Origin: Trichosphaerium sp. ATCC 40318
Taxonomy: Eukaryota; Protista; Tubulinea
Direction: 5' to 3'
Assembly (NCBI GenBank): GCA_038496445.1
Contig: JALMLS010000165.1
Location: forward strand, 1-64,000
DNA length: 64,000 nt
The notes below the pieces were generated by a model. The model saw nothing but the letters and a program-made list of their open reading frames with translations. It was not told where the DNA came from and did no database searches. Position numbers and translations under genes: made by a program. Shown piece after piece: positions 14,030-63,566 of this stretch; position 1 is the stretch's first letter, and every line of letters begins with the position of its first letter.

Positions 14030-14570
14030 GAGAAAGTAAATTATGGTTAGACATGGTAAACTACTTTCAGTACATGCAAGGGAAACAGGAAGGTGAATAA
14101 GAGATGCGGCATTCAAATGGTCTATCAATGCCATTATTGTTAATGGTAAATTAGGAGGAGTTTCAGGAGTGGTACGACAATGGTCAACTATAGGAGCAAC
14201 GTAGAACCTTAAAATAAAAGGAAATGTATGAACTTCCAAATTGTCAGGTGGAACAGGAACTTTTTTATATCAATGGTATACCAGAAAGCTTGGTATTTCA
14301 CTTGTCAATTGAGGGAGCAAGTTAATTATGTAAATGGTAAACAAGAAGGAGAGTGTAAGAATGGTCAAATAGAAAAGCAGCGTAAGTACGCCAATGTCAA
14401 ATACAAGGAGTATGTAATCACATTAATGGTGAAGACATGAAAACGGTCTATTAGTAAAGATTTGCATGGCCAATTCTGTAAGCATAACTAGAATGAGAGG
14501 TCCAGAGGGTTTTTTATGGTCAATTGAGGGAGCAAGGTAATTATGTAAATGGTAATAGAAGGAGAGTCTA
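14030..14570 (+). pseudogene. Decayed MORN-variant repeat gene fragment
   Basis: Fragments such as EWYDNGQL, QLREQVNYVNGKQEGECKNGQI and a second caattgagggagcaag unit, interrupted by stops and frameshifts; same repeat type as 34735-36318. Confidence 0.7.
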
Positions 14571-14699
14571 ACAAAACAGTAATTGGAAGATACCTTTATT
14601 TAATAATAATGGAACACTTTTTTTACACTTGTACCTGTTTCTTAGTGCTTATCAAAACTGTTACTTCTTAAACTACAAGTATGATACTTTATTAAACAT

Positions 14700-15810
14700 T
14701 GCTAATGAAGTGTTTATTTCTTGATCTAAATCACCCTCAGGCGAAACATGCTTTTTGTCCAACATAAAAAATCCCTGAAATTCCAACATTTGCTGTTAAC
14801 AACCGTTACTGACTCTGGTCACGGAGCTTGTCTTCTATTTTCTTCTTCAACCTATCGCTGACATCCAATTTTACCTACATTAATAAGTGACGGCGGTAAA
14901 AGAAGAACAACAGAGAACAACAACAAGCAAATTCAATAAAAATACTTAGGTTGGAAAAGCAAAAAACACATACAATAGCACTGTCAATTATATTAATCTT
15001 TGATTCACGAGCTTTCATATACACCTGTTCAGTGATCAATGACTTAACGGTATCTCTCTTAGATACTATTTCAAAAATATCAAACTGAGCCTAAACCATA
15101 GAAAAATAAGATAACAACTAAGAAAATACCAGGATATTGTGATCACAATTCCTTGGTTGCAACAGCGCATGTGTTGGTCTTTCCATGTGTTTTACTAAGA
15201 TAGCACCACAACATACACACTTACAACCAAGGAATCCATAATAAGGTTGCAGAATGAAGTAGTGCAAAAACCCTGTTCTCAGGCACCAAAATAAAGAATA
15301 CTTGTTACTAAGTTTAGATACAAAATTCACGTGCCGTAACATCACTAACTGCATATTTTGCAGCTTTTTTAATTTCTACCTCTGCAATTGCTTTAAAATC
15401 TCCACCATACTCTTTAACAATCCACGGTATTTCATCCTTATGTGGTTCATATAAGAACCGAAACCAAAGCGATAATTCTTCACAATCGTTTGACTTCCCA
15501 GGGCAATGAATTGTTATAGGATGAGGTCCTGTGCTAACCATGACTGTGGAATATAGATACGGTAGCTTCCAATGCACTCCAGGCGAGTATACTGTGTTTA
15601 AAACAGCACCAGATCTTGTTTTAAGAACAGCTACTTTACCAGGTTCAACTCTAAAGAAAGAATTGCGGCATACGAAAATAGAAGCGATTCCAAGGCCTCG
15701 GAAGGTGCTTTTAGCTTGATGTGACTAAATTTAGTAAACGCACTTGTGAAAATAACTCCTGGATGCCTTAAAAACTTAAATAGCCATGTAAAGCTAGTCG
15801 TAATGCTCAT
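14700..15810 (-). CDS. Divergent prohibitin/SPFH-domain protein (ends approximate)
   Basis: SFFRVEPGKVAVLKTRSGAVLNTVYSPGVHWKLPY...LSLWFRFLYEP..EIPWIVKEYGGDF aligns with the prohibitin N-terminal and SPFH regions. Confidence 0.65.
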
Positions 15811-16553
15811 ACTGTATGTTGGTATTATGTGAACTCAGATTTTGACTTCGGCTTGACTGCGTAGAACACCAACAAAATGTCACATTTTTAAACGGTTTAG
15901 TCGATAACAGATTTTGTTGCTGAGTCCTGGAGGCTTCGGTTATCCGGCTAAAGATTCCGGCATAGCTGCTTTTACATTACCACTGTTTATTCTCAAACAA
16001 AAAAACATTGTCCTAAACTTTTAACAAGGTCTGACACTTCCTGGTTTTAATCAGCATAAGCCCTTTTATGTTCCCTATGCTATTGTTCTCCAAAAAAGAT
16101 ACACGTCTGCTTTTTTTAATCAAAGGGTTTTAATTGAGCTGTATACAATAAGCGATTATACAAGTGTTTTCTTGCACTTTCGTTTCTTAAAACTTTCTTG
16201 GTTGGAATAAAAGATACAAGCACTTCGCTATCAAGGATGTTTTCAATCATTCAAGATGTTCTCAACACAACAATTAGATACCATGTAACTCTTTGCACCC
16301 GAAGTGGAGTTGTATGTAATTGTTAACACCTCTATAGCGCAAATAAAATCGTACAAATCATATAGTAAGTGGAAAAGAGTCTAATTGTAACACGTGAACA
16401 AGTAGGAGGATTTTTTAAGCTTGAAATCGGTTGATTTATAACTACTATTTGATTCTATCTGTAATGCGGTAAAGTCAGTTTTGTCCGTGGAGCTCTACTT
16501 AAAGTTGATAAAACTGTGACTTAAGTTACAGTCTTAGTAGCTCATTAGGCTAA

Positions 16554-17823
16554 ATGGCACGTCAAGCACATGGTTTATCACCGATTCATTACGCTAAAGT
16601 AGTGGTTCTCGGAGACGGAGCAGTTGGTATGTCGTAACAGAGGCTAATTTATCTTTGTTAAAGGCTTATTTCGCTTGGTTTAAGGCAAAACATGCTTACT
16701 GATACGCTTTATAAACGATTCTTTCCCAACAGATTACAGTACGATCTATTTTCAAGTTTAAACGTTTTAAATGCTTATTAATACAGCACCAACGGTTTTT
16801 GATAACTACAGGTAAGTAATGGAGTTCTTGTTGAGTGTAATTCAATTGAACTCTTGCATTTTTTTTGCTGATGGCACTGACTTTTGTGATAAGCAATCCG
16901 ATAACTGTTTTGGATAAGCATGTGACTTTAGGTTCGTCTTTGACTTTGTTGAGTTCTCCCCTTTTTGCTTTCTGATTTGAATTGACTTGCATGTTAAAAG
17001 GTACATGGGATACAGGTGGTGGCGAGGATTATGGAAGAATTAGACCTTTGAGCTATCCTGCACGTGACTTATAATTAGTTGGTTTTATAACTGTATTTGA
17101 AAAGCAGAAAAGTCTTCAACAAGTATTTGCGTCAACTCTGCTATCCATGTCAAAGTCTCGCTCTCATGCGAATTTTAGGGAACAAGTGTTTTTCTTGTAT
17201 GTTTCAGCATCATTTCTAGAGCTAGTTTCGAAAATGTTGAGGAATACGTACCACAGAATTGAACATGTGAAAATACCTAAATTTTTGAGTTTAGTGGAAA
17301 CCTGAACTGGCGCATCATTGTAATGATGTACCTATTGTTCTTGCAGGTCTCAAAATGGATTTGAGAACAACACTTAAACCTGATGGAAGTCCATATGATT
17401 GTATTACCAAAGAAGAAGCTCAACAGATGGCAATAAAAATAGGTGTAAGTCTTTGCAGTTTTCTTTAAAATTTGTTGCTGACACAGGTATAAAACAGGCA
17501 CATTCGTATGTGGAATGTAGTGCTCTCACAGGAGAAGCTGTAAAACGTGGTAAGTATTATCCAAACATATACTCTAGGACAAGGTTTAAGTGTGAACACG
17601 ATGAAAGGCAATGTCAATGAAGGCAAAGTGTTGAGCTTACAGAAACCACATTGATGTTTGTCTTATCATCACGTTTACAATTTGCACCCTTTTGAATGAT
17701 TGATTACAACAAAAGATTATTTTTAATGGTTTGATTGTAGCTTTTGATGAAGTAGCCATACTGGTGTTGGCAAATAGAGGGCAGATAATACCTCCAGATA
17801 AAAAAAGTTGTATTGTAATGTAA
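16554..17823 (+). CDS. Rac/Rho-family small GTPase with atypical switch II (not in ORF track; 9 exons)
   Basis: Spliced: KVVVLGDGAVGKTCLLI...PTVFDNY...[28 protein letters not shown]...GLKMDL...ECSALT...CIVM* (CaaX box). One GC-AG intron, 17060-17178. Confidence 0.9.
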
Positions 17824-17915: not shown

Positions 17916-19015
17916 CTAGAATTCAAGATCGACAATAAGTTCTGGTACGAAAAACTCTCCATTGGCAACGTTGCATATTATATATTCCACTGTTTCAGGT
18001 GGTAGATAAGGCTCAAGACGTTTGATACAGAGCATAAGGTAAAAAACTTGATCTCTAAAAAACTTTGGGAAATATTGATGTAATCTTGGATGCCATCTCT
18101 GATTTAACGCCAATTTCATCAATTCCTTTGTTTCTTTATCACCTTGCGAATTTGATTCCATGTACTCATCAACCAGTTCTATACAAGTTGATGTTTGATC
18201 CCCAGAAGAGAAAGGTATTGTTACATCTGCATTGAACATACGAAGAATCAAAACTCTTCTAACATCTTTTGATTCAATAGCCAAATGCAAAGGTGTCTCT
18301 GAAACACATATTGAGTCATACCCAAACTTGGAATTTCTCTTCGTGTTAACATCAGCTCCATAGTGAAGTAATAACAGCATTGAGAGTTCATTGAAATCTG
18401 CTTTTTTTTTAATCACGTGATGTAATGCTGTATAGTATTGTGTATGTGTCATTGAATGAACCTTATGAGCTCTTATACAATTATAAACTTCAGGATCAGT
18501 CCCAGGTGTCTCAAGTAGCATTTTAAGGGTGACAGGATTATCAAGCGCTTTTGTAAGCACTGTGTATGTGAAAAGACTCCTTGTTGCATTTATTGTTTCT
18601 GAAGCATTTGCGTCACCACCTTTAGACAGCCCGAGTTTCAAAAGGTCATAGTACTTTTTTGAAGGGTTTTCAATAGTAAGGGCCACAATCTCTATCAAAG
18701 CTGGTTTTTTAAACGCTAAAACACTCAGTTCACCATTGACGTCCGCATTGTATTCGAGGAGCATCGAAATCATTTCTATGTTTGCTATCGCTTTCTTGTC
18801 CGTAATTCGTTCGTCTGTGTGTAGAGGAACATGTATGAGCGTGCATCTGCTAATTTTAAATCAGTTAATTGTATGGTTATGAGAAGATGAGTGTATTTGT
18901 ACCCCCATCGTCTATATTTAATAGTTTCATTTGGGTTTACGCCTTTACGAAGTAATTTTCTAACTGTTTCAATATCATTTGCCAGTACAGCTTGGTGTAG
19001 TTCTGATTTAAACAT
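17916..19015 (-). CDS. Ankyrin-repeat protein with C-terminal F-box/SOCS-like motif, paralog 1 (2 exons)
   Basis: Ankyrin motifs (ELHQAV, TALHHV, TPLHLAI) and C-terminal WHPRLHQYFP...YLPPETVEYII; a single intron (~18903-18850) joins the two ORFs. Confidence 0.85.
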
Positions 19016-20127
19016 GTAGAAGGAAAGAAATAAATACTACCATTGAAAGCTAAGGGAACTTAATTTGTATGTTGTTATTCCAAAGTAATCCATGTTACAG
19101 GCAAACTGATAATTGGAGAATCCAACCGTTCAAACGCACGTGATTTAAACAAACATTTTTGATTTCGATATTGATCGCTATTTCAAAGCCTTTTGGGCAT
19201 AAACCAGCACTGGTAACATGTTATAGTGTTTGGAGTAGTTGGGTAGTAGGCAAGGGAGATTAAATTCTGTTTCAATCTTGGCACTCTAGGTGCCGTAAAT
19301 ACAGTTATTGATGACTGATATCCCTTGACAAACGTGACAAATGACTCACCAAGAACCTCTGTCTAAACACAAGATGAACAAAGTGGTTGTATTGGAGGGT
19401 CAGTCGACTCTTTGTAGACATCTGATGCGTGCTCCTACCAACGGCTTCGGTGCCATAGTTTTTTCCGAATTTTCCGAAAACAAAAATTCGAAAAAAATAG
19501 AATTCGTAGAAAGATGCATAGCTAGGGCAGTCCACTAAACTAGAAAGCGCCTGGTTCACTTACAGTCGGGTCCGACGGCTTCAAACCTTCATCTGTAACT
19601 CTTTGGGCGTTGGCACTTTCTATAACTTTAGAAAGGCTGTAGCACCTTTAACTTCATGAAACAACTCTAAGTGGCCTTAAAGTTTGATTGTGGTCAAGGC
19701 AACAAGTGTTTGTTGCCTGACGAACAGCATGCCAAGAATGTTTGAGTTTTTGTTGAGGCGTTCATGTGAGCTTGTATAATTTGGTCTTACACTCATACAA
19801 CATTTCTGAGTGTATGAAGAACATGACCATTACTTATCGAACTAACATATGTAAAGACTATAAACTACAATGATCTGTATCTATCACTAACACCTCAATC
19901 AATCTATTAAATCACAGGTGACATGTACCTTCCAAAAGCAAGCACGCTATTAAGCTGACATAGTGTTGATATAAACTTATTGACTACTTTTATTCTTTCA
20001 AGAATGTACTTCTATAGATGGTTTTTATAGTACCTCACAAATAACATAGAAAATAGTATTGAGTCCAGTTATTTACTAACATACAAAATGATGAAAAAAT
20101 GGATTCCTTTTTAGTTGATTCTGACTG

Positions 20128-21729: not shown

Positions 21730-22030
21730 ATGTCACTATTCAAAGTCAACAACAAGTTCTGATACAAAAAACCCTCCATTGGCAACCTTACATATTATAC
21801 ATTGTACTATTTCAGGTGGTAGATAAGGCTCAAGACGTTTAATACAGAGCATAAGGTAAAAAACTTGATCTCTAAAAAACTTTGGGAAATATTGATGTAA
21901 TCTTGGATGCCATCTCTGATTTAACGCCAATAGCATCAATTCCCACACTTCTTTAAGTACAGATTGAGCCATACCCAAAAAGCACATGCTAAATAAATTC
22001 CTGTTTTGTTAACATCAGCTCCATAGTGAA
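21730..22030 (-). pseudogene. Truncated, internally deleted third copy of the ankyrin/F-box-like gene
   Basis: 3' end nearly identical to 17930-18125; after HYGADVNK the sequence jumps to the C-terminal segment, and there is no 5' half. Confidence 0.85.
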
Positions 22031-22039
22031 TAGTAGCGG

Positions 22040-22190
22040 ATAGCTCTAGCTGGTGTTCATGCTAACCTAAGTTGTTGCAAGTGCAGACGAAGCATTGGCA
22101 GGTGTACATGAAATTGATTTATCGGGTACAAATGTAACAGATAAAGGGATGATAGAGCCTAGCGTATTTACCTACATCAGTGAAGGCATA
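22040..22190 (+). pseudogene. LRR fragment related to the F-box-LRR gene at 55675
   Basis: ALAGVHEIDLSGTNVTDKG matches the repeat unit LGGVHTIDLRLANVTDKG. Confidence 0.7.
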
Positions 22191-23328: not shown

Positions 23329-24289
<961 letters not shown>

Positions 24290-24721
24290 AACTGCCTCTA
24301 TAAAAAAGAACAATAAACCGTTGTGAATAAGCATGAAAATAGCTTTTCTTTTATAAGTGCTAGAACTTATTTATGATTACAATAAGCTACAGCAACACCG
24401 TGAGTACTATTGTTTCAGACTTGATTTTAATGGACGTCCATGATTTTGGTGGTAAGACGCAGCAAGCAATTTCAAAAAATACAGCGGCTAGCTGTGTTCT
24501 AATATTCAAAAAGAGTAACAGAGAAGTGTGCTTACATTTTTGAAAACGTGATTGGATTATTCACACACAGGTGGCTTAAGACTGTAGATAAAAATTTCTC
24601 TTGTTATGTTTATACTCAATGTAAAACCTACAAAAAGAAGCACTGAAGTACGTTTTTTATTCTACATACAGCATTAAACAAATAGAATTTTGTTTTTTGG
24701 TCTTTGTTTTTGCAGTTCTCC

Positions 24722-27825: not shown

Positions 27826-28910
27826 ATGCTTAAATCAGAACTACACCAAGCTGTACAGGCAAATTTAATTAAATATGTTGAACAATTACTTCAAGAAGGC
27901 GCAAACCCAAATGAAACTATTATTTATTCTGAAGGACTAAAGTACAACAACACTCATCTTCTCATAACCATACAATTAACTTATTTAAAAATTACAGATA
28001 CACGCTCATACATGTTCCGTTACGCACAGACGAACGAGTCAAATGCCAGAAAGCGACACCAAACATAGAAATGATTTCGATGCTCCTCAAATACAATGCA
28101 GACGTCAATGGCCTTTATGTTTATGATAAAGGGGACCATGAAGGAACAGCTTTTCAAGAGATCTTGTCGCTGGCGCTTGAAAACCCTTCCGAGTACTATG
28201 ACCTTTTGAAGCTTGGTCTATCAAAAGGTGGTGATGTAAATACTCTACAGACAAGCGGTTGGGGCTATTTCACAGATACATTGCTTAAAAAGGCGCTCGA
28301 TAATCCTGTTATCCTTCAACTGCTACTCAAGACACCTGGCACTGATCCTGATGCCTATAATTTTACAAAAGATTGTTCCTTTGACACACAATATACAACA
28401 TTACATAGCTTGATTCAACGAAAAACAGATTTCAATGAACTCTCAATGCTGTTATTACTTCACTATGGAGCTGACGTTAACAAGAGAGGAACTTCCGATT
28501 TTAATCATGGTTTAATATTTTCTTCACGCACACCTTTGCATTCGGCTATTGAATCAGAAGATGTTAGAAGAGTTTTGATTCTTCGTATGTTCAATGCAGA
28601 TGTAACAATACCTTTCTCTTCTGGGGATCAAACATCAACTTGTATAGAACTTGTTGATGACTACATGGAATCAAATTCGCAAGGTGATAAAGAAACAAAG
28701 GAATTGATGAAATTGGCATTAAATCAGAGATGGCATCCAAGATTACATCAATATTTCCCAAAGTTTTTTAGAGATCAAGTTTTTTACCTTATGCTCTGTA
28801 TCAAACGTCTTGAGCCTTATCTACCACCTGAAATAATGGAATATATAATATGTAACGTTGCCAATGGAGAGTTTTTCATACCAGAACTTATTGTCGATCT
28901 TGAATTCTAG
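27826..28910 (+). CDS. Ankyrin-repeat protein with C-terminal F-box/SOCS-like motif, paralog 2 (2 exons)
   Basis: Same architecture and intron position as 17916-19015; 3' ~380 bp nearly identical. Confidence 0.85.
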
Positions 28911-29129
28911 TTTCAATGTTGACTAATTAAATAAACACTTTTCTTTCACAAATAGTCTACTAATTTGGTTCTATAAAATTAGCTTTTAGCCTTACCACAG
29001 ATTGTTGATTTTTACATGTATTCACAGTTTCGTAATCTGTACAAGGGTTATTTCTGATCATTGGTAGTACAATAAAGCTGAGTGCTATTCACCGAGGCCA
29101 CACAAAATAATAATCCTTAATCTTGTACC

Positions 29130-32100
29130 CAAGTAGTACAACTGAAACTTGTTGTTTTTAAGTTTTCATGGAAAGGAAATACACAAAAAAACCGATCTAC
29201 TTTAATTGTTTTTTCGCTAACAGTGACTGAGAAGAAGACTATATCCATGAACTTCACCCACTCCAATGCGGAGTTGACTCCCAAGAATATAGTAATAGTT
29301 ATTTTATACTATTTGCTTGTCAGCTAACATAACATTTCCTCGCGTAAAATGGTGAACTTGAGTCACGTGATATAATAAAAACTAACGCTGGGTAAACACA
29401 ACCCATAAAAAAAGTTCAGCAAAAAATACACCGTCCGAAAACCGACTTGCGAATTGACAAAAGACGGTTACACAAAGACACGCGAACAAAAAAACAATCA
29501 TTATTTTGAGATTTTCAAAGTTTGTTTCCTAGTTTAACTGCAAACGACACTTGACGCACAATGATGTGTATTGCTCCTCTTCACACTAAACAGCATATAA
29601 TCTAGAACACTTGCAGATTTTCCTGACTTCCAGATTTACCCATTCCCGTAAAATTTCACGAAACACAATCTTCAAAAAGAATACCTGTAAGTACGGCTAA
29701 TGACTTAACCTTAGTCGGTTATTCGTTTATATCACGATTTCATGGAGCCTCTCGTGACCCTGAATAAGGGTTTTGAATTAACAGCGAAGCAGTTATGCGA
29801 TCTAGTTATGAACAACAGCAGTACGTTATTGTAATAAAACGGAACGTTTTTATAACTTGTTTAGGCAATAATACGCTTGAGAAACTAGGTGGAGCTAAGA
29901 AACTAGCGGAGCTTTTGAAAACTGATCCATTAAACGGTTTACCTGATAGTGAAGGCCCTGATTACGACGAAAGGCGTAAAACGTATCTTTTTATTTTTTT
30001 GTTGTTATTAATAACACGTTTTCTGTAACTCCACTAGATACGGTGAGAACATTCCAAAACCACCTCCAAGGCCTTCTTTTATTAAGTTTATTTGTATAGC
30101 GCATTTTGACGTGTGTTTGGTGCGTTGTAGCCTCATTGACGCCCTGTTTTATTCTGTTTAGATAATTCTTGCTCTGGTTTGTGCCGCTTCAAGCGTACGG
30201 ATAGATGGCCATTTTTAATAAATTACCTGACACACTAATAGATTGTCGCGTTAATATTCGGTGAAGATAAACGCACAGATTGGATGGAAAGTGCCGTAAT
30301 TTTATTTGTTGGCACGTGATTTTTTTTGTACCATTTTTTGAGATTTTTTTTGTGTTTTTGTGTTTTTTTTGAACCTTTGGTAACTGTTTGTTGTAGCTAT
30401 TCTTATCTTGTTGGCGAATACTATATCACGTTATATGACCGCCTTAAAGTGCCAGAAGATCCCAACAACACGTCTTAACACAAGTCGATACACAGTAATG
30501 CGAGGTGGAAGCAAAAAACTGATAGACAAGGAAAGCCTTCTTGTAGGAGATGTTCTGCTTCTTAATGGAGGTGATAAAATTCCTGTTGGTAAAGTGGCCC
30601 AGTGTCTTTTCTGTATAATAACCATGTGCGTAGATGGAGTGGTCCTATCCTCATATGATATGTATTGTGATGAAAGCGCAATGACAGGAGAGCTTAAGCA
30701 TGTACTAAAAGGCGATTCTTCACCTATGTGTTTACACGGGTGCAACGTTTTCAATGGCTATGGATCGGTGCTCGTAGTAGCTGTAGGTTCAAATACAATG
30801 ATGGCAGCGTTACTCGATTCGATAGAAGAGAACCTTGACCCTAACGATACTGAACTGAGTCCAACCTTAACTGCAGTACCAGTGTATAAGTACAAATTCG
30901 GAATCGTTGTAGCTATTGTTGCGATTACATGTCTGCTCATACGGTAAGTACAACTGCAATTAACCACATAGATTTACTTATGTTATACCTAGATGGTCCG
31001 TAGTAAAGTACAGTACTAATAACGACCCATGGCGGAACGCAGATTTGGTTACAATTTCAAATTTTTTCATATTTTTTTTAACAATCATCGTTGTCACTCT
31101 CCCAGAAGGTACCCACCCTTGTTGCACAATAATTTATACATGCAATACATACCTAAAAATTAACTAACTGATGATGATTAGGTATTTATTCAGCAGTGGC
31201 TTTAGCATTAGTGGCAAACATAGCAAAGTTGCCTCCAAATGTAGCAATAAGTACCTTTATGAGTTTCAAAGATTTAGCCCAAATAACAAAGATTGTTGCT
31301 GATAAAACAGGAACCCTCACACCCAATCAAATGATTGTACGCAAGACGTACTTGGCAGGATCTTATACCAAAGACACTCTTCCGGGCGAAAGGAAGAAAT
31401 CAATCATGTCATACATAGCAGAATGCGTCGCTGTTACTTGTGATGGCAGTATTACCTTTCTAATAAATGGACAAACTGAGTATGATGGACTCAGTACTGA
31501 ATGTGCTTTATTATCATATATCCATTCAGTGGGATTCGACTATACAGCTTTAAGAGATGAAGCTGTTCGGGTAGACAAAATCCCATTTTCCCGGTACGAC
31601 ATGGTCTCTTTCTGTTCTTGTGACAACTTTGTTGAGTTTTTTTGTCTAGCATGACAAAATACAAAAGTGTCATTGTTAAGACGGTTAACGGATATCGATT
31701 GTACTGCAAAGGTTATCCAGACAACATCATGAAATTAAGCACGAAAATGGTAAAATCAAAGACTAAACATGATACTATCGTTTGTGTTGGTATTAGTGAT
31801 AAGTACAAAAAAAAAGTTGAAAAGAAATTAGATGAGGTAAGTTTGTTCTATTACTCTTTGTCTTTGTCTTCAAACCTGACACCTTATTAGTACGCTGAAG
31901 GTTTAAGGGCAATAGCTATTGCATTCAAAGATATTCCAGCCACAAGCGATATTGGCAAAGCTATAGCTTCAGGAACTTCGGCATCAGAAATTGATGGTAT
32001 TTGTGATGGATTAGTTCACCTTGGGATTTTTGGGCTTGCAGACTCTCTAAGACCAACTGCTACAGAGGCACACTTTATTCATCAAAGACGATAATATCTG

Positions 32101-50403: not shown

Positions 50404-53400
50404 GAATGTTTTATTGTTTAATGTTGTGTGAAGTTGACCTTGTATTCACAAAGTTTTATCATTTTATTGTGTTTGACATTGTAAATATTTACACCATGTT
50501 CACGTATCTTGTAGATTTTCTCATTTTCTGTTTTGATTTCATTTTTTTGTAAGCTACCACAATATACATTGCAACAATATCCTTTGTAAACAACAGTAAG
50601 AAACAAAGAAACTTAAAAGTTTAAAAAAAAACTTGAAAAAAACCAATTCCTCACCACAATAAGCTCCAGCGCAGCTATGATCAAACAGTATATCCACTGC
50701 TTCCAGTCTATAGAACAATTGAGAATAAATTAAAAATATGTAAACTCACCGAGAGACACTACTTGAAGTGCTTTGCTGCCAAATTGAATAATAATAGCTT
50801 GTAAAATAGCAACTGTTGTAAATGCAAAAACAATCTTCCAGTTATCATAAAATCGAATCAAAACATTATCTAAAATACCCTGAGTAAGTACAGCAACATA
50901 TTGAGTGGATACAAATACCTGGAACAAGGCGTTTGGCATTGAACATGTTAAACAATTGACAGAATACAATAAAGTTAAATACAAGAGTTGAATTCAACTC
51001 TTTCTCTTTCAGCGACTCTTTTTCAATGTCATTGTAAATCCAAGGAAGTGCTGATGAGCCCCAAAACAATGTAAAGTACGTGAAAAATACTTGATAGATT
51101 GTATGGAACCCAATAAAAATCCACATGCTACAACAGAATGGTAAGCACTTTTCTTCTTTTTTTTTTTGAATTTGAAAACAAAATACCTGAAAGTGAATAA
51201 CTTTGGTTTAAACTTTGACAGTTTCTTTGGCGCTTTTTCGGACGCAAAACCCATGGCTGCTAATGAATTTATACCCAATAGTATCCATAATAAGTGAATA
51301 GCTTTTAAAGGACTTAAACCTTGCCCTAAAGAGCCCAACATCACCAAGACACCACAAACAAGATACACTGTAAAAGAAGAAAAAAGTCAGAAAAAAACAA
51401 GATTAATCGTGATCTGAAGCCAGAAACAACATTAATACTTATACATACCTGTGACCTCGTATTGCGTAATCTTGGATATAGAATCATAAACATTATGTGA
51501 AAAGATCATGGCACGTGTAAATGAGTTAAAGTCAGTGATATACATATCACTGGCTTCTCTTGCCGTAGCTGAACTGTTCATTGTCATACAAACGCCAACA
51601 TCTGAAGTATACAGCATTGGCGCATCATTAGTACCGTCTCCTAAACATGCAACAATATGACGATTTTTTCTGAGATTTGCAACATAACGATCCTTGGTTC
51701 TAGGAGTAGCTCTACAGATGACTTGAAAATCTTTTGATTTTTGTTCACTTTCTTCAAGGTTGTCATAATCTCTCCCTTAAAATACTATTAGAGACATAGA
51801 TCAATGTATCTTAGAGTTTGTTGGCTACCTTGGATTATTTCTCCGTCTGTGAGAATACCACATTCTGTAGCAATAACTTTTGCAGTAATCTGGTTATCAC
51901 CTGTAACCATTGTAACATCTATGCCTGCACCAATCCACTCTTCTATATTCTAAGTATATCAATGAGTTAGCAGATATTATCGTCTTTGATGAATAAAGTG
52001 TGCCTCTGTAGCAGTTGGTCTTAGAGAGTCTGCAAACCCAAAAATCCCAAGGTGAACTAATCCATTACAAATACCATAAATTTCTGATGCCGAAGTTCCT
52101 GAACCTATAACTTTGCCAATATTGCTTGTGGCTGGAATATCTTTGAATCCAATAGCTATTGCCCTTAAACCTTCAGCGTACTAATAAGGTGTCAGGTTTG
52201 AAGACAAAGACAAAGAGTAATAGAACAAACTTACCTCATCTAATTTCTTTTCAACTTTTTCTTTGTACTTATCACTAATACCAACACAAACGATAGTATC
52301 GTGTTTAGTCTTTGATTTTACCATTTTCGTGCTTAATTTCATGACGCTATCTGGAGAACCTTTGCAGTACAACCGATATCCATTAACCGTCTTAACAATG
52401 ACACTTTCGTATTTTTTCATGCTAGAAAAAAAAAGACTCAACAAAGTTGTCACAAGAGAGAGACCATGTCGTACCGGGAAAATGGGATTTTGTCTACAAC
52501 TACAGCTTCACCTCTTATATTTTCATAGTCAAAACCTAGCGATTGGATATGTAATAACAAACCACAATCAGTATTAACTCCATGGTACTCAGTTTGTCCA
52601 TTTGGTAGAAAGGTTATATAGCCATCACAAGTAACAGCGACGCATTCTGCTATGTATGACATGATTGATTTCTTCCTTTCATCCGGAAGGGTATCTTTGG
52701 TATAAGATCCTGCCAAGTACGTCTTGCGTACAATCATTTGATTGTGTGTGAGGGTTCCTGTTTTATCAGCAACAATCTTTGTTATTTGGGCTAAATCTTT
52801 GAAACTCATAAAGTTACTTATTAGTACAGTTGGAGGCAACTTTGCTATGTTTGCCGCCAATACTAAAGCCACTGCTGAATAAATACCTAATCATCATCAG
52901 TTAGTTATTCTTAGGTATGTATTGCATGTATAAATTATTGTGCAACAAGGGTGGGTACCTTCTGGGAGAGTGACAACGATGATTGTTAAAAAAAATATGA
53001 AAAAATTTGAAATTGTAACCAAATCTGCGTTCCGCCATAGGTCGTTATTAGTACTGTACTTTACTACGGACCATCTAGGTATAACATAAGTAAATCTATG
53101 TGGTTAATTGCAGTTGTAATTACCGTATGAGCAGACATGTAATCGCAACAATAGCTACAACGATTCCGAATTTGTACGTATACACTGGTAGTGCAGTTAA
53201 GGTTGGACTCAGTTCAGTATCGTTAGGGTCAAGGTTCTCTTCTATCGAATCGAGTAACGCTGCCCTCCTTGTATTTGAACCTACAGCTACTACGAGCACC
53301 GATCCATAGCCATTGAAAACGTTGCACCCATGGAAAGCTATAGGTGAAGAATCACCTTTTCGTACAGGACTAGGCTCTCCTGTCATTGCGCTTTCATCAC

Positions 53401-54670
53401 AATACATATCATTTGAGGATAGGACCACTCCATCTACGCACATGGTTATTATACAGAAAAGACACTGGGCCACTTTACCAACAGGAATTTTATCACCTCC
53501 ATTAAGAAGCAGAACATCTCCTACAAGAAGGCTTTCCTCGTCTATCAGTTTTTTGCTTCCACCTCGCATTACTGTGTATCGACTTGTGTTAAGACGTGTT
53601 GTTGGGATCTTCTGGCACTTTAAGGCGGTCATATAACGTGATATAGTATTCGCCAACAAGATAAGAATAGCTACAACAAACAGTTACCAAAGGTTCAAAA
53701 AAAACACAAAAAACACAAAAAAAATCTCAAAAATGGTACAAAAAAAATCACGTGCCAACAAATAAAATTACGGCACTTTCCATCCAATCTGTGCGTTTAT
53801 TTTCACCGAATATTAACGCGACAATCTATTAGTGTGTCAGGTAATTTATTAAAAATGGCCATCTACTCCGTACGCTTGAAGCGGCACAAACCAGAGCAAG
53901 AATTATCTAAACAGAATAAAACAGGGCGTCAATGAGGCTACAACGCACCAAACACACGTCAAAATGCACTTTACAAATAAAATTAATAAAAGAAGGCCTT
54001 GGAGGTGGTTTTGGAATGTTCTCACCGTATCTAGTGGAGTTACAGAAAACGTGTTATTTTTACCAATAAAAAAAAATAAAAAGATACGTTTTACGCCTTT
54101 CGTCGTAATCAGGGCCTTCACTATCAGGTAAACCGTTTAATGGATCAGTTTTCAAAAGCTCCGCTAGTTTCTTAGCTCCACCTAGTTTTTCGAGGGTGTT
54201 ATCGCCTAAACAAGTTATAAAAACGTTCCGTATTAGTACAATAACCGTACTGATGTTGTTCGTAACTAGATCGCATAACTGCTTTGCTGTTAATTCAAAC
54301 CCCTCATTGAGGGTCACGAGAGGCTCCATGAAATCGTGATATAAACGAATAACCGACTAAGGTTAAGTCATTAGCCGTACAGTCTTTTTGCAGATTGTGT
54401 CGTAAAATTATAAGGGAATGGTTATTTTTAGGCATTCAGCTAACAAGTAAGAAAAACAATTTCAGAAAAAAATAACTGCAAATACTATAGTATAAAATAA
54501 CTATTACTATATTCTTGGGAGTCAACTCCGCATTGGAGCGGGTGTAGTTCAATGGAAATGGCCTTCGTGTCAGTCACCTTTAGCGAAAAAACAATTAAAG
54601 TAGATTGATTTTTTTGTGTATTTCCTTTCCATAAAACAAAAAAAACAACTAGTTTCAGTTGTACTACTTT
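50404..54670. repeat. Inverted segmental duplication, right arm
   Basis: Reverse complement of 29130-33650. Confidence 0.95.
50489..54329 (-). CDS. Divergent P2B (PMCA-like) P-type ATPase, copy 2
   Basis: Inverted paralog of 29742-33567 with the same exon structure, including GC donors at 53755 and 52003. Confidence 0.9.
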
Positions 54671-55674
54671 GGATTTGCCCTGAAATAACGTTATTCTATT
54701 GTAACATTAAGCTTACTGTTTAAACAGCCGCTCCAGATTAGTATCACACGTGATTTTCTGTTGGAATGCTCACGTGAAGAAATCCACAACGATACGCTAA
54801 TGGTATAGCTATAGAGTTGCAAAAGGCTAACTATGTTCACAAGTTGTCCCAAAAAATCAGGAGTAGTGCTAACACAAAATAGCATTATTTCATGTCAAAT
54901 CCTCCTAGCCGAATTATCATTTTTAGATTACAAGATATATATCGCGACAACTACGCTTACTTAATTATGAAGGTCAGTCTTATACCTTCTCTTAAATAGT
55001 TCAGACCGGCGACGATAAACCAAACAAGCGGAAAAACTCAGCTCGTGACGTACCAAACTATACTACTTTTTGTGAAATTTCACAATAGGTTTCGGGTTCT
55101 ATTCCTAAGCAAACACGTTTTGGCCGTCTTAAAAGACAACTGTATCACAAAAATAGAGACAAAAAGGTCAAAAAAACCCTACAAACTTGAAGTCATTTGA
55201 AGCTGATACCAATAAGTACGTCATTGCTCCATTAATAGTCATAGGTAGTACACCTATAAACTCAAACTGAGCACAATCTATTGAAGGAGGGATAGGATGC
55301 AGTTGACCAAATGTAAGAGTGATGAGGGGGAGTTGCATTGATGGGATGTAATGGGAATAATGGTTTGGCCAGTGGAGAGTTGTACAATTTTGTGAAAAGA
55401 CCAAATAGATGAACTTTTTAGGGACAGTTTTTATTCCTAAAAGATACTACTTGTACAAAACTACAAATCAAAAAATACTCTTGCAACCCTAACCAATACA
55501 GAGGTGAGCTGGAGTTTACGCATAATCCCCTTTTGTTTTTTTTGCACATGTCGTTTAATAAGCAGGAGAGATTAGTGATAAAAAAGATAGGTGTAACCTG
55601 TATCTTATGTCAAAGAACAAAAAGAACATGGTAAGATGTAGGGCATTTGCTGGTACAATATTTATTGCTAAGTT

Positions 55675-56800
55675 TCAAATTAAAAAATAGTCTGGAATCT
55701 CATCTACATGCACACCTCTTTCTTCGAGAGTAGCAATGAATTCACGTGAGAAGCTTCCTTGTAATAGACGGATATTATGCAAGCTAGCTAATGATTCAAT
55801 TCCTTTTTCTGTGATATTTGGACAATCAACCAGGTTAATCTCTTTGACACCTGAAAGATGACTGAGCCACTTATCTGTTACGTTTACATTACGAGACAGA
55901 TTGATTGAATGCACACCAGTAAGACTTTTCATACACGATACAGTGATTCCTTTACAACCTGACAGAGCTATTTTCTTCACACCTTTCAATCTTGAAATAC
56001 CTTCATCTGTGATGAGATCACATTCACTCAATCTTATGGTATGTGCACCTGCGAGGGCTGAAATTCCTTCATCTGTGATGAGTGGGCACGCACATAGATC
56101 TATGTTATGTACACCAGCAAGCGCTGAAATACCTTCGTCTGTGATGCATTGACGTCCACACAGATTTATGGTGTGTACACCAGCGAGTGCTGAAACACCT
56201 TTGTCCGTTACATTGGCAAGCCTTAAATCTATGGTGTGTACACCCCCCAATTTAGAAATACCTTCATCTGTCACTGATCTGTTGTGGAACAAACTTATGG
56301 TATGAACGCCCGCTGCAGCTGAAACAACTCCATCTGCCATACTGTCTCCCAGACAGATATATTTGAGGTGCTTGGTAAGTGGTAGTAAACCCACTTCTGT
56401 TACTGCTGTACATCTAGACAATGACAAGCGACGTATACCACAAATATACTTCAATCCTACATCTGTGAGGTTGCCGTTGTCACGAATTCCGAGCGAGTCA
56501 ACACCCGCAAGAAGTGCGACTTCAAAATCTGTTCCCCAACCTTGCATCTCAATATGGGTGTTTTTTAGAAGAGGACTTCCACAAAGACGAGCACAACATG
56601 CACTAGATCGAAGTACGATAAAATCGTATCCAACGTGATGGTGAATAACGTTTGATAAACGGTTACAGGTGAGATACTTGAAATCTATCAGAGCGGTCCA
56701 CAAACTCTAGCATATAAGCGATTATCTCTGTTGGTACTTCTAATAGGTTGGGTTCATCTATCACCTTGTTTGGTCCTGCATATGCTGTTTTAGAACGCAT
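55675..56800 (-). pseudogene. Intronless F-box plus Cys-containing LRR gene with a frameshift inside the F-box (pseudogene or assembly error)
   Basis: ATG 56800 gives ...LLEVPTEIIAYMLEFVDRSDRFQVS then a stop. The frame shifts at ~56672 to LTCNRLSNV, followed by ~10 LRRs (AGVHTIxLxxCxxITDEGIS). Confidence 0.8.
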
Positions 56801-57059
56801 TCTGGCTGATGAGTGGCTTTATTTAAGATGCTGTTGAAAAATAATAAAAACCTAATCAATCAAGGTTCTTGCCTTTTCTTTGGCTCAGATTCAGCTCCTG
56901 GTCCTTAAGCTTCCAGAAGTAGCTGTAACAGTTTGAACCTAATGACTACAGCTAATATAGGATACGACTCTCGAACGGGAAGAATTTATTATGGAGTCAA
57001 ACAAAGGTCACTCAGCTACGTTGATTGATCACTATTTAATTTGAATTGGGTTTTTTTTT

Positions 57060-57900
57060 GTTCTTTCATCGCGTTTAACGTGTATGCTATACTCTCAACC
57101 TCACTGATTTGAATGTACCATCTTTATACCACTCAGCCTTTACTCCATCTACTTTATCATCCTTATAGTAGCACAGAAAACGTTGGTTTCCGTTTTTGTA
57201 ATATGCCTTAAATTTCCATGACGAATACCATTCTCATAAGCACGAAATGAGCGTAGTTTTCCGTCTTTGCACCGTTCAGTCCTTGTCCCATGTTTCGCTC
57301 GTTTGTGGTGTTGTTCAGTGAGTCTACACTTGCCATTATTACCAATGTTTCAATTCAACAGAGTCACCTCGCTTGTAGCCAGAAAGGCAATAGTTGCCAT
57401 TTTCGTACCATTCTTTAATACGTTTTGTAGTCCCTTTGTAATACACAGTACCACGCTTGCATCCACAGAAGCATACCATTTATTTGATTCAACACAATGA
57501 CCTCTATCATATGATTTTACACTAGGCTTTCCGCTGGCATGCCAAGTTTAATAATTCCCGTGCAGTTTACCATTTGTGTATGACATCATAGTCTGTAGGC
57601 TCCCATTCTCATACCTTGTCTCTTCAGGTCCATGTTTCTTTCCTTTGACATAGTGTACCTTGGTTTCAAGCCTACCATTACTGTACCATTTTTTGTACAC
57701 TCCTTCCTCCTTCAAGTTTGCTGTTCATATACTTACACTTCTTCTCCATGTGACCATTATTATACCACGTTGCCTTCCTACAAGAACACCGTGATAATAG
57801 TATTCTCTAAGAACTATGACTACAACGCTTATACAGAAATGACAAGCTTTTGACATCGTGTTGAGAGGTAAAAAACACCTGTCCTTAACAAAAATAGACT
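57060..57900 (-). pseudogene. Decayed MORN-variant repeat gene
   Basis: TWYNNGHMEKKCKY, KWYSNGRLETKVHYVKGKKHG, RYENGSLQ, KEWYENGN, with frameshifts. Confidence 0.75.
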
Positions 57901-58870
57901 ATTTATGGAACCAACAAGCTTTTAGTCCAAAGCTATGAAAGTAACTTGCGCTCGTAGGATGGACAGTTACTCCCAATAGAATGAATAGGTTTTTTGGGTC
58001 ACGTCCTTGCGATGTTTCAGCGAGAGCAACACCTGTAGCTGCGAGTCTCTTCCCAAACTTTCCAAACACCGCTTGAGCAGTCGCTAAACAAGCTGTTAGT
58101 CGGGATGCTGATTGCTCTGTTAGAACAGGCAGTGTACCTGGTGCGAGAGATTCCCATCTCCGTCACCCAGCTGGTGAAGTTCAAAGTGCAACTTAGATTC
58201 AGAATAAACACAATTCGGAGATACTCCATCGTAGTAGTAGACTGTATTCATGATACAGTTGTTGTAGTGCATTTTACTTACTCCAATACTTTTAAACTGG
58301 TTCTTAGGATTTGGCAGACCATTTACAAAGTCAACAATATGCTCTCCAGCTTGATGCCATGTGGTACTAGCTTCTACATAGTGTTTTAGATATCGTACTA
58401 TTTGCCTGTCATTGTTAGCTGTAGGCTAAAATGTACCTTCGTAGAATACTGTACAGCATAGATCACGGTGCTCCGGAGCATCCTCAAGTGTGATTTTGTT
58501 GGGTTGATTGTAATGGTGTACGTTCCTGGCTTTTGTAAGACTAGGGTTGCTTTTGTTGTTGTTTCCTCCATTCGCAAAGGTTTATTGTGGTTTGTGTGCT
58601 GCTTTTGCAGTTCTCTTTGGTTTTTTTCAGTTGCAAACAATGGTTCTCTAATTCAAATTAATGTCTGTTGAGTATTGTTCAGTGAAAAAAAGGCAAAAAT
58701 CTTTCACTGTAAAGTTTACAGAACTTGCTAGTTTTAGCTAATAGTTTTGTCAAAACACAATTACTTAGTTAATGGGTGGTAATATGTCCACCTATACGGT
58801 GGGTTATTTGTAAGTACGCATTTAGATAACTTTGTCTAACAATGATTTATTACGTGATCAATCCATTCAG

Positions 58871-61053
58871 CTACAAGAGTAGAAACAAGAGAGCTACGAT
58901 TGCTGACACTGCAGCTTTATCATATGTAAAACCACTTGTTGTTTGCGAACTTGGTGCTACTGGGGCCTGAGTAGTAGGATCTGTTGGCGCTACTGTGGTT
59001 GGGGGAATTGGAGCTGTTGGTGTAGCTGTTGTCGGAGGCACAGAGGGAGCTATTGTTGTTGGTGGTGTTGGTCCAATTGGAGCAGTTGGTTCTGCTGTAG
59101 TTGGAGATATAGTCGGTGGTGGAGTCGGCGGGAAGTCAAGTAAAGCGTTTCTAGCACGAGAATGTCAATAACCATCGAGTTGACAATTAAAAAAAACGCA
59201 CTTTTCCCACTGTTCTAGCATCCTTGAGTATACTCTGAAATCATCGATACAGGTACCATTACCACTCAATCCTGTAGTAGTTTCTATAGCAAATAAGTTG
59301 TAACCAAATATAAAAAGAAACACGTGACTATGTTTGTCGAACTTTAAAAGCTTTCTAGGTATTGTTTAAAACACGTACCTCCAATAATAGGTCTTCTAGA
59401 TTGAGCATTACCAAGTACAGGTGGAGTAACTTCAAATACTTTTGCGACTTCATTATTGACAGACAAAGTAATTTGATTATTAGTGTTAATTATTTCAAGC
59501 ATTATCAGATTCCATGTCCTTGCAGGGGTGTTATCTATCCAAGCAGTACCACTACAGCTACTAGTCACACACATAGTCAGCCTGGTACCGTTAATACCGG
59601 AGTAAAGCTCCAATCCAACACTGTTAGGATTGTCACGAAAGGTGAGTATTCTTTGACGTTGGTTTTTTTCTCTGCTTAGCCAAAAAGCGATTGTTAGCGG
59701 TGCTTTTTTAATAGCAGCGAAGACATCTTCATCAGCTTTGATAGATTTCGTTAGTCTATAAGAACACACCATAACCCTTTCAGGTATATTGTAGCGTACT
59801 TATTTCTAGTTCCTTTGCTCCGTCCTCGAAACAAAGTGCACTGTTTGGGTTTCCAAATCGGTCAGCTTCAAACTCTGGATCAGTACCAGCGTCTGTATAC
59901 ATTCCTCCAATCTCGCCTATACCATCAAATGTAATATGAGCCTCTATAATAATAACTTATTAACCCCTTATCAAGTACATTGTAAAAACGGCTATATAAA
60001 AGAAAGTCTTCTTACCAGGTTCAAGTCCTTGATTAAAGGGTGCAAAAGGAGGATAAGTAAAGTCAAGTTGTGCCGATCTAGAGCGTATTAGTAACGCAAC
60101 TAAACAAAAGAGTACCTTTCTGTCGAATCAAGTGCACTATCCCAAAATTTCATGTCATCTATCGCGTAGCCATTTCCACTTCGGATTGCTATCCAAAAAT
60201 AAGAGAATGAGACGTACAACAAAAAAAACAAACACAACACATAAATAATATGAAAAATTTTTTTCAGCAAAGTCACGTGATAGTGTGTTTGAAAACAGGG
60301 TCAAATTTGAATGCACTGGAAGATGACATACCATCTCCACCAATAATAGGTAAAAAATTAGACGTTGCAGATAATACGGGTCCTCCAGTAACTACAAAAT
60401 CTGTTGCAAGAACATTGTTGACATAGAACTCGATGTTTGTGTTTGCAGATTGAACGACAAACGTCAATAAAAACCATGTTCCTGCAGGTAAATTATCCTG
60501 CCATGCTCTGCCACTGCAAGCGTTTGCTGAACACATTGTAATTCCATCTCCATTCGTCCCAACGTAAGCTTCAAACCCACCATTTTGTGGTGTATCGCGA
60601 GCATCGAATATAGGCTGTGTACGTCTGTACTTACGGCTCATCCAGAAGGAAAGAGTCATAGGAGCGCTTTTAAATACGCTTTGTATTGTTGTATTACCTA
60701 AAAACGCACGTAAACGCGACGATCAACGTAGAGGAGTAGTTTTTAAAGCGTGTAGCGCGTTTTTTGGTAAAATATCCTTTCTGTACTGCGTTACGTACTA
60801 ATGCGAACTGGCTTTGATTCCTCTCCGAAGTATATAGCGCTGTTGGCATTTCCAAAGCGATCCGCAACAAATATTGGATCTTCCGTTCCTGCCGTTGTTA
60901 ACAAATCTCCTTCAAAGTCACCATCAAACTTCAAGTGTGCGATTGGATCTATTTAACCGTCAATTAACTCTGTTTGTAGTTTTCTTTGATCCCCAACCTG
61001 TACCTTGGGCTGTAGCAATAGCAAGCAGTACAAAACATACCAGTAAACTGGAT
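58871..61053 (-). CDS. Secreted/GPI-type protein with two LamG (concanavalin-like) domains and a Pro/Thr stalk
   Basis: Signal peptide; two domains each with DRFGN[A/P]NSA, T[L/I][S/A]FW and IDD[M/F][K/R]; PPTPPPTISPTT stalk; hydrophobic C-terminus. Confidence 0.85.
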
Positions 61054-61289
61054 TTGATACCCTTATTGTCCATCTGTTAAGAGCGGAAGGTAAATAAAGT
61101 GAATTAAAATTTATAAAAATACGAAACCCGAAGCCCGAAAGCCGAGAAAATTTTTTCTAGAATGACAGCCGCTCACTGAATTTATGTGTACCTTCCTAAA
61201 AATACAGTCATTGAGCTGTAAAGCAAGCCCGCAAAAGAAGGTTACAGAACGTTCAAAGGATTATACGTTTCTAATGTTCGTGACAATTT

Positions 61290-61683
61290 GGTATCCGTCT
61301 GTTGAACGAAAACCATAATGGATTAACGAGTGGATCCACTGCTTAAGGCCTGTTAAGTTAGAATGATATTTCAGTGGAAAAAGTATGTTGACGCAGGGTG
61401 CCAGTCAATTTCAACAGAGTTACCTCGCTTGTAGCCAGAAAGGCATAAGTTGCCATTTTCGTACCATTCTTTAATACGTTTTGTAGTCCCTTTGTAATAC
61501 ACAGTACCACCAGAAATACCGGTCTCGGACTGAAACGAAAAAAACCGGTTCATTAGCGGTCCGCTGCCACAAAACCTTCCTGTCTTTATACATTACCCTA
61601 ATCACTGTGCATGCCCTTAAGGAGTTGGAGTGACTTTTTTTTCGAAATACCGAAAATAGTTTCAAAAACGTTCTTGAAGCCAA
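61290..61683 (-). pseudogene. Second MORN-variant fragment sharing ~105 bp with 57351-57454
   Basis: 61406-61510 is near-identical to 57351-57454 (GTVYYKGTTKRIKEWYENGN.CLSGYKRG); frameshift in a homopolymer run and a stop. Confidence 0.75.
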
Positions 61684-62023
61684 AGAATTTACTTGTTACA
61701 TTTTACTACGCATGCAAAGTATTAAAATAGAGGTTTGGGCAAAATGTAATGAGACCCAAAATATCACGTGAACTTTTGATTTTAGTGTTTAAGACTACTT
61801 GTAATCAACAGAGTAGCTAGAGTCAAGCATGCCATTAGAGAAGATAATGTGTTGCATCCTAAAATCCTTTATCTTTTTTGTTATACCAGGATACTACCGC
61901 TACTGACGCTCCCCACATAACTGGGTCACTTCGAAAAGAATGAAGCAAGTTGTTTTGATTATGTATAGCCATTTTGAGCTAGACAAACCATTTACAACCT
62001 TCATTAAACTTATACGAGTAACA

Positions 62024-63566
62024 TCATTTCTTGCCAAGCATCTTAGAGAAAAATTTGGATATCTTGGATTTACTTTTTGTAGTACTATTTTAGGGTTAGG
62101 AATGTAACACGTGTGAAACCGAAATAATTTAAAAATAGCAAAAACAACCAAAATATTGTAAATAGACAATACCTTACAGGTGGCAACTTTAACACCATTT
62201 GTTGATAGTGTTCAACGATAAGTTCAAAAAGCTGTTCAATATTTTGGCCTGTTTTACAACTCACAGAAATAAAACGTGCTCCCCATGACTTTGCACGTTC
62301 TACACCTTCAGATTCGTGTACTTGTGTTTCATAATCTAGATCACACTTATTCGCAACCTACAAAACAAAAGTGACCAAACAGTCCAGAACCATCACGAAA
62401 ATCGCAGCAAAAGAGCAGTACTAATATCATTGGGAATACTTCGATATCCTTAACACGCATGATCTGGTCTCTAAACGGTACAAGTTCATCAAAGCTTGAT
62501 CTACTGCTACTAGAGTAAACAAGAACAAATATCTCTTCCCTGTGCATATATTGATCACGCATTGCACTGTACCTGATAAAAAGTAAATTCACAAAGACAA
62601 AACAAAATGGTCTGATATGTATACGCACTCTTCTTGGCCAGCGGTATCTAGTACACTAAATTTAGCATAAAAATTTCCCTTTTTGATGGACATTATCGTT
62701 TCGTCTTCTAAATTCAGTGTGAGTGTATATCATGAAGTACAATGCAACAAGTCATGTTACTGAAGATTCACTTACCTATTGTTGGATCGTATTCATCCAG
62801 GAACCGACCAGTTATGTATCTTGTAATTATAGCAGTCTATTATCAAGAGTTTGTTGAGTTAACGCAAAAACACGTGTTTTATCACGTGACAGAAAAAAAA
62901 ACCTTGACATACACATCCTACGCCTCCACCTCCACAGAAACAACACTTTATCTTAAAAATCATGTTGTATTAGGCAGTGTTCAAGTTAACTTTAAAGGTG
63001 TTTAAACACGTACTTCAAAGTCAGACGCTGTGATTTTTCTTACGGATGTCTTTGACATTTCCAACTTTGGTAAATGTTTTGATACTTCGTTATCGTACGA
63101 ACTGGGAAGACGTTAACGTTTTATAGTAGCAAAACGTTTAAAAGAGATCACCTGGAAACTGAGAGCATGACCACCTACAAGAAAGCTGTTAACTTCTAGA
63201 GTAGTTTTGAAAAAAATAAAATTCGTAGCTCCTAGAGGGCTTTGTTTTGATAGGTTGCAATGGATCCAGTTAGATTAGTACCTTATGTGTCCAGTCGTAG
63301 ATAAAAGCGCTCTTGATGTTATCACCTGTTGAAGTTTGTCTGTAAAATGTATTTTCAACGCTTGGAAATGTACCTTTAGGTTCTGATCCGAAGTGTTGGG
63401 CGTAAAAACGTTGCCACAAAAAGTTATCAGATGTAAATGATCTAAAAGACTTAGAAGTAGCGCCAAGAGCTACTAAATGTTCCACATCGAGGTTATAGAT
63501 GATTAACACAAGTATTTCACGCGGAAACGATTCAAAAGGTAATAAATCTGTTTCCTTCTTCTCCAT
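62024..63566 (-). CDS. F-box-Ras fusion protein with non-canonical P-loop and no CaaX
   Basis: F-box exon (FESFPREILVLIIYNLD...TSKSF...LWQRFY) splices in frame through two linker exons to IKCCFCGGGGVGC|TAIITRY..EYDPTI..DTAGQEEYSAMRDQYM..NKCDL..SCK; ends KSKISKFFSKMLGKK*. Confidence 0.82.

Follow-up and report, generated by a model that had tools for sequence, protein, structure and literature searches.

F-box superfamilies of hundreds of genes are known from nematodes and plants, where a conserved F-box head is joined to a fast-evolving target-binding domain and the families evolve by birth and death and include numerous pseudogenes; whether they serve in immunity, as has been suggested, is debated (PMC8120010, PMC3030570). 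Expansions of repeat and F-box genes have also been described in amoeba-infecting giant viruses and Chlamydiae (PMC5753266, PMC4209131), and these have the ankyrin (ANK), MORN, leucine-rich repeat (LRR) and F-box classes and the ecological setting in common with the marine amoeba considered here, Trichosphaerium, for which a draft genome of 70.87 Mb with 37.69% GC has been published (PMC10521059). We analysed a 64,000-nucleotide stretch of Trichosphaerium DNA (G000:C132:1-64000, hereafter the window) from an assembly of 70.28 Mb in 642 contigs, and within it a 49.5-kb span of genes and gene fragments of the MORN, LRR, Ras and ANK types. An earlier note on this DNA had proposed that the span is a host immune repertoire in which F-box-type modules are coupled to variable sensors. 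The reading that we favour, at a probability of roughly 60%, is that the genes in the span are ordinary or decaying copies from several lineage-expanded families whose products are probably cullin-RING substrate receptors, mainly of the Skp1-Cul1-F-box (SCF) class, and that they lie in a region of recent segmental duplication. The span represents fairly well a number of very large and rapidly changing families whose products probably pick out proteins for degradation.

The genes and most of the fragments listed in the earlier note were recovered by open reading frame (ORF), Pfam and hidden Markov model (HMM) searches, the spliced models (ANK1, ANK2 and Ras) being searched exon by exon. The principal genes are as follows.

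34735-36318, minus strand: MORN_2 gene, 527 amino acids, intact and intronless, with 18 repeats of 24 amino acids (Pfam MORN_2, PF07661, YwqK-like; E 5e-63 over 9 matched stretches)
55675-56800, minus strand: F-box-LRR (FBXL-like) gene, with a head ORF at 56663-56800 and an LRR body ORF at 55675-56703
62172-63566, minus strand: F-box-Ras gene of eight exons, one (63282-63566) for the F-box and seven for a Ras-like GTPase; 3' end provisional
17916-19015, minus strand: ANK1, with exon 1 at 19015-18903, a 56-nt intron and exon 2 at 18846-17916 (ORF and Pfam Ank)
27826-28910, plus strand: ANK2, with exon 1 at 27826-27941, an intron at 27942-27997 and exon 2 at 27998-28910; inverted paralogue of ANK1

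Four F-box architectures had been named for these genes. The assignment holds for Ras and, at the level of the family, for LRR; it is probable for the MORN head and fails for the ANK genes.

By its homology, the LRR gene is a member of a true FBXL-like family, for which the F-box is recognised at family level, although a frameshift divides it in the window copy. Its body matches LRR_6 (Pfam E 2.6e-15) and is 99.4% identical to those of two intact siblings, L052 and L053 on contigs C383 and C404, which are single 381-amino-acid ORFs carrying the F-box and the LRRs in one frame. Alignment to these siblings showed that the window copy has lost 2 bp within its F-box, between 56670 and 56671, so that head and body are no longer joined in one frame. 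Because the siblings are collinear with the window gene except for this 2-bp indel, the window gene has no intron and its copy is broken; the idea that splicing joins the F-box to the LRR body was rejected. An HMM of the genome's own F-boxes followed the window head through positions 2-27 in one frame and positions 28-50 in the other. Pfam found no match in the window head exon alone and scored the intact sibling below threshold, at 16 bits, and the paralogues L055 and L056 exceeded the Pfam F-box cut-off, at 24-26 bits. The 45-amino-acid upstream ORF matched the F-boxes of many paralogues, several of which are also Pfam F-box calls, and searches with the head returned at least 63 F-box matches in the genome that overlap Pfam F-box calls. 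The own-genome HMM also matched animal FBXL2/20 (E 1e-9 to 3e-8), which, together with transcripts of the same organism, are the outside relatives of the gene. With FBXL-type proteins (the FBXL2, FBXL20 and Skp2 class) the gene shares an N-terminal F-box followed by cysteine-containing LRR_6 repeats; it differs in that the Trichosphaerium family is multi-copy and intronless and the window copy frameshifted.

The sibling segments on C383 and C404 correspond to window positions 55675-63566 and carry, besides the intact LRR gene, the same Ras gene, with one exon 100% identical. The Ras-to-LRR spacing is ~12 kb and 26 kb on these two contigs, respectively, compared to ~6 kb in the window. The segments are either alleles, that is, structurally different haplotypes, or recent duplicates of the right end of the window; in the former case the frameshifted LRR copy would be a null allele that segregates.

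The F-box of the Ras gene was recognised by Pfam directly. Exon 63282-63566 matched F-box-like with E 3.8e-10 and 39.8 bits (cut-off 24.3) and F-box with 25.5 bits (cut-off 20.5), and the Ras profile (PF00071) matched one exon with E 5.5e-7. The F-box exon lies upstream of the Ras exons, and the eight-exon model stays in frame without stops down to 62172; all of its junctions are GT-AG with the end of exon 7 set 3 nt upstream and the end of the last exon re-placed. Since at no fewer than eight loci an F-box exon precedes a Ras exon by ~1 kb, with order and strand unchanged, F-box-Ras is a real small family. Besides the window, it was found at these places.

C404:680-1826, F-box-Ras locus
C160:99396-100557, F-box-Ras locus
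C160:13504-14780, F-box-Ras locus
C201:89374-90531, F-box-Ras locus
C120:91207-92400, F-box-Ras locus
C162:47113-48382, F-box-Ras locus
C239:8477-9652, F-box-Ras locus

The window gene retains the G-domain motifs DTAGQE, NKCD and SCK. Its P-loop does not fit GxxxxGK[ST] and reads GGGGVGCT, with Cys where Lys is expected, a substitution that makes canonical nucleotide binding doubtful for a product predicted to have a Ras-like fold.

The MORN gene opens with a head of ~55 amino acids (LLDIPCELQQYICTF...LSKRAA.NTHFD), ahead of repeats that AlphaFold2 (AF2) modelled as beta-hairpins with a predicted local distance difference test score (pLDDT) of 85-97. The strict head motif AAxNTHFD occurs 97 times in the genome, compared to 0 for a reversed control. 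Profile comparison with hhalign matched the head to F-boxes with a probability of 66-82%, including 82% against the LRR-type heads and 79% (score 26.3) against 31 F-boxes of the same genome; the scores overall were 26-28. One hundred column shuffles scored 9.0 +/- 2.0 with a maximum of 16.6, placing the match of the MORN head ~8 standard deviations higher. A profile search of the head against the sequences of solved structures gave matches at chance level only. These comparisons suggest that the head is probably a derivative, if a very divergent one, of the F-box.

At least some members of the MORN family are spliced and expressed, because the MMETSP transcript P0051, which encodes a head and MORN repeats, is 100% identical to contig C87 and spans an intron-sized gap there; the matching locus, G000:C87:100317-101434, is a head-plus-MORN member with an intron of ~280 nt. 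Bacterial YwqK/MORN_2 proteins, of which thousands are detectable, share the repeat type PF07661 with the Trichosphaerium protein but lack the head and are 21-48% identical to it.

The ANK genes stand apart. Both are intact and contain one 56-nt GT-AG intron each, with splice sites conserved between them. ANK1 consists of divergent ankyrin repeats and, at its C-terminus, a conserved box of ~70 amino acids (WHP...FR..VF.LMLC..R...LPPE...). The box consensus across the window copies (17919-18137 and 28689-28904) and outside proteins P0001-P0022 is W.P..H..FP..FR..V..L.LC..R...LP.E. The idea that this box is an F-box was rejected by Pfam, HMM and profile comparison alike. Pfam also gave no SOCS_box or PRANC match to the box at E up to 1, nor to family members or outside homologues, and a profile search against the sequences of solved structures gave nothing beyond chance. 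A word search with ANK1 found no relative; a profile search with the box among 1.84 billion representatives found 22 weak relatives and no annotated domain, and a look-up in the ESM Atlas returned unnamed clusters only. In those protist relatives, the region ahead of the box is ANK, RCC1, G-alpha, SNF2 or unannotated. The box is an unannotated module, covered by no Pfam family, and it behaves like a portable one, as would an adaptor. ASB SOCS-box proteins and poxvirus ANK-PRANC proteins resemble the ANK genes in layout only, with ankyrin repeats and then a short conserved helical C-terminal box; the Trichosphaerium box differs from theirs in matching neither SOCS-box, PRANC nor F-box and in having the BC-box leucine out of register. 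The ANK-box family is small (12-14 loci in the genome). The general scheme of an adaptor plus a variable sensor fits the MORN, LRR and Ras families and not ANK, whose box is not an F-box; the ANK genes are a separate small family outside that layout.

Genome-wide, canonical F-boxes and MORN heads each number at least 150 and are dispersed over 70 Mb. All 150 of the 150 scored F-box matches were above the cut-off, with 1398 first-look candidates, and the 150 scored MORN heads all had E 1e-17 or better, with 1141 first-look candidates; in each case the true family size lies between the two figures. The expectation for 49.5 kb is accordingly 0.1-1.0 F-boxes and 0.1-0.8 MORN heads, against two and one observed, numbers that call for no special explanation should the candidate counts prove roughly right. 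The proposal of a dedicated immune locus is not borne out: the span is ordinary and the families lie all over the genome. The only real local cluster is the ANK trio, which arose by inverted duplication, with three of the 12 ANK-box copies of the genome within 11 kb (P ~1e-7). A MORN gene or relic was found no more than 1.5 kb from an F-box-LRR gene at 8 of 30 sampled loci, one of the eight being the window itself and two possibly duplicates of each other. This proximity exceeds the density expectation, with P between 0.017, for the highest density, and 1e-9 according to the family size assumed, so the F-box-LRR and MORN families tend to lie together genome-wide, as they do in the window.

The remaining features of the span are broken copies of these families and a duplicated ATPase gene.

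14213-14568, plus strand: MORN relic, degenerate, with broken frames (repeat HMM E 2e-5 and 4e-3; phmmer E 2e-4)
21739-22008, minus strand: ANK-box relic, with only the C-terminal box left in an open frame of 90 amino acids (phmmer E 1e-38)
22071-22150, plus strand: LRR-unit relic of the F-box-LRR family, adjoining the ANK relic (HMM of the gene's own LRR units, E 1.2e-8)
57090-57724, minus strand: MORN relics upstream of the LRR gene (Pfam MORN_2 E 1e-8 at 57548-57715; phmmer)
61374-61592, minus strand: MORN relic, a partial duplicate (97%) of the relic at 57.3 kb (repeat HMM E 4e-4)
29128-33629, no strand assigned: left arm of an inverted duplication, with a P-type cation ATPase gene (Pfam E1-E2_ATPase; inverted repeats I1-I3, I5, I6, I8, I10-I12, I14 and I15)
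50427-54672, no strand assigned: right arm, the counterpart of 29128-33629

Five broken relatives had been reported in the span, and relics are present at all five sites; four of them are independent, because the 61.4-kb relic duplicates a portion of the 57.3-kb relic at 97% identity. A further LRR remnant proposed at 19570-19750 was rejected (HMM E 0.67). The ANK-box relic is 85% identical to the ANK1 box in protein and 90% in DNA. The two MORN relics at the right end share a direct repeat (57354-57454 and 61410-61510), and the DNA of the 57090-57724 relic, which belongs to a locally repeated unit, is confined to the window, C383 and C404. Between these two relics lie two paralogous concanavalin-A-like lectin (Laminin_G_3) exons, 59344-59772 and 60273-60659, seemingly within a locally repeated unit of ~4 kb that is also found on C383 and C404. 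As context outside the families, the multi-exon ATPase gene forms a 4.5-kb inverted segmental duplication that is 87-98% identical by segment, mostly 96-97%, with its arms ~17 kb apart and the MORN gene between them.

Between ANK1 and ANK2, dS is 0.40 in the ankyrin part and 0.03-0.05 in the last ~545 nt, and this sharp fall gives a mosaic that indicates gene conversion. Five close MORN paralogues have heads 93-98% identical and lengths of 353-560 amino acids; judged from these comparisons, whole repeat blocks are gained or lost between close paralogues. The claim of rapid turnover is well supported by the relics, the frameshifted LRR copy that is 99.4% identical to its siblings, the change in MORN repeat number, the conversion between the ANK genes and the segmental duplications, and further by conserved heads standing beside fast-evolving repeats. 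The families evolve by birth and death, as these data show, through tandem and segmental duplication, unequal exchange in repeat arrays, gene conversion and loss by frameshift or truncation. For the suggestion that the fragments serve as donors in recombination we found no support; the single signal of gene conversion involves two genes that are both intact.

The ratio of non-synonymous to synonymous change (omega) differed between the parts of the genes. In the MORN family, omega of the head was mostly 0.05-0.25 (~0.05 in the pair of the window copy and C195a; 0.77 in the pair of the window copy and C132b, which has 4 substitutions), compared to 0.2-1.5 in the repeats, and the contrast in non-synonymous change between head and repeats was significant (P 5e-6). 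Across 62 repeat units, pN/pS was 0.25 at framework positions and 1.5 at nine hypervariable positions, a contrast that is a description and not a test because the nine positions were picked by their variability. In the ANK genes, omega of the box was 0.1-0.4 in most pairs, and that of the ankyrin part was 0.3-0.7, reaching 1.8 in the youngest pair (P 0.14). Positive selection was not significant: omega was 1.5-1.8 in the youngest informative pairs, with Fisher P of 0.14 and 0.43. F-box-LRR relatives were found as transcripts.

Taken together, these observations argue for the substrate-receptor reading. A short conserved head would dock on Skp1-Cul1; in the LRR and Ras families this head is a true F-box, and in the MORN family it would be one that has worn down. 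The protein to be ubiquitinated would be selected by the variable domain, which is an array of MORN-variant repeats or of LRRs, or else a Ras-like fold. As to the machinery, Skp1 genes are present in the genome, the best locus being C137:79701-79844. Such families would place this amoeba among the few lineages, nematodes and plants, with F-box receptor families in the hundreds. They have in common with those lineages the conserved F-box head beside a fast-evolving target-binding domain, and the birth-and-death evolution. They differ in their binding domains, which are MORN-variant (YwqK-like) and LRR_6 and not FTH, DUF38, Kelch or FBA, and the MORN-variant is a repeat type not known in an F-box receptor role. 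Two smaller leads that could be tested are the box at the C-terminus of the ANK proteins and the recurrent F-box-Ras fusion, with the P-loop change noted above.

Several findings weigh against this reading. First, the MORN head is too divergent for Pfam, which found no F-box in it (in one of 29 members, F-box-like was matched at E 0.037), AF2 leaves it at pLDDT 39-59, and its profile match to F-boxes is confident mainly over the first (LPxE) helix. Second, the ANK box has no Pfam F-box match and reached 9-25% in hhalign over the LPPE helix only, and Foldseek and VIA, applied to a model of the ankyrin part plus box, aligned only residues 1-70, the ankyrin part. Third, Skp1 genes are present at 3-4 loci, an unexpanded set, unlike in nematodes and plants. 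Fourth, word searches found no transcript matching the window's own copies. Lastly, true family sizes may be anywhere from 150 to the first-look candidate counts.

Among the alternatives, genomic drift survives best, though we regard it as unlikely. Under drift, most copies would be products of unchecked duplication with little if any selected function, and a conserved minority would do housekeeping SCF work, as proposed for the plant F-box superfamily (PMC3030570). The many relics and the fresh frameshift favour it, repeat omega is near 1, and some open frames in the families are short. However, the heads are under strong purifying selection even in young copies, as in the window and C195a pair, the framework positions of the repeats are conserved, and several members are transcribed and spliced.

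In the immune reading, put forward in the earlier note and spelled out here, the variable repeats of a germline-encoded intracellular repertoire would bind proteins from giant viruses or from bacteria living in the cell and direct these proteins to degradation. The nematode F-box families make this a fair hypothesis by analogy (PMC8120010), the same argument having been made for their expansions; we give it somewhat less weight than drift. It draws on the very large size of the families, on the conserved head beside repeat positions that appear hypervariable, on omega values above 1 in the youngest informative pairs, on the birth-and-death dynamics, and on the proximity of F-box-LRR and MORN genes at 8 of 30 loci. 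Against it, the excess of omega over 1 does not reach significance, the choice of hypervariable positions was made post hoc, purifying selection mostly prevails in the ANK family, which is small, and the span is not a distinct immune locus. Similarly low odds apply to the joint proposal that hundreds of SCF receptors, each built of a degenerate F-box head and a MORN-variant or LRR array with a hypervariable surface, tag virus or bacterium proteins and that the ANK box is a new ligase-docking module common to several protist lineages. If this were true, the similar genes carried by viruses and symbionts of amoebae would represent either counter-measures or copies that had been captured.

The genome paper reported 1568 virus-matching gene models, with F-box and MORN named as the commonest domains (PMC10521059), and the repeat genes of the window are intron-poor, as might be expected if F-box and MORN genes were recent lateral transfers from giant viruses or the span a viral insertion. 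Pfam searches of window ORFs of at least 90 amino acids found no viral hallmark domain, GC is even at 33-40% across the whole window, and the neighbours (WRKY, lysozyme-like, FG-GAP, methyltransferase-like, ATPase and lectin-like genes) are ordinary and intron-rich. Viral-contig scans with the MORN head (two) and with part of the repeat array (one) found no relative; among the best 120 relatives that the MORN protein has outside the genome, those with names are bacterial proteins of the YwqK type, 21-48% identical to it, and the head is absent from all but the transcript of the organism itself. Paralogues within the genome are 50-98% identical, and the ANK genes contain spliceosomal introns. 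The Trichosphaerium genes differ from the giant-virus and Chlamydiae expansions in being host nuclear genes with host-type introns and neighbours and in having a MORN head that was not found in viral contigs. A viral insertion is therefore rejected for the window and viral transfer as a whole appears very improbable, the data fitting a home-grown expansion better. Many of the virus-matching F-box and MORN models may belong to this home-grown family, in which case the estimate of viral gene traffic would change.

Other features were observed in the window. Its left end contains a WRKY DNA-binding domain exon at 1156-1503 on the minus strand (E 2.6e-11) and an ORF for a bacterial-type lysozyme-like/SLT protein at 2419-2865 on the plus strand (E 1e-8). 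A tandem duplication with a period of ~2.1 kb and 98-100% identity joins 7872-8419 and 9977-10518. Positions 23398-24290 hold a 9-nt periodic array of at least 43 overlapping copies, in a proline/glutamine-rich low-complexity ORF with a spurious Amelogenin match.

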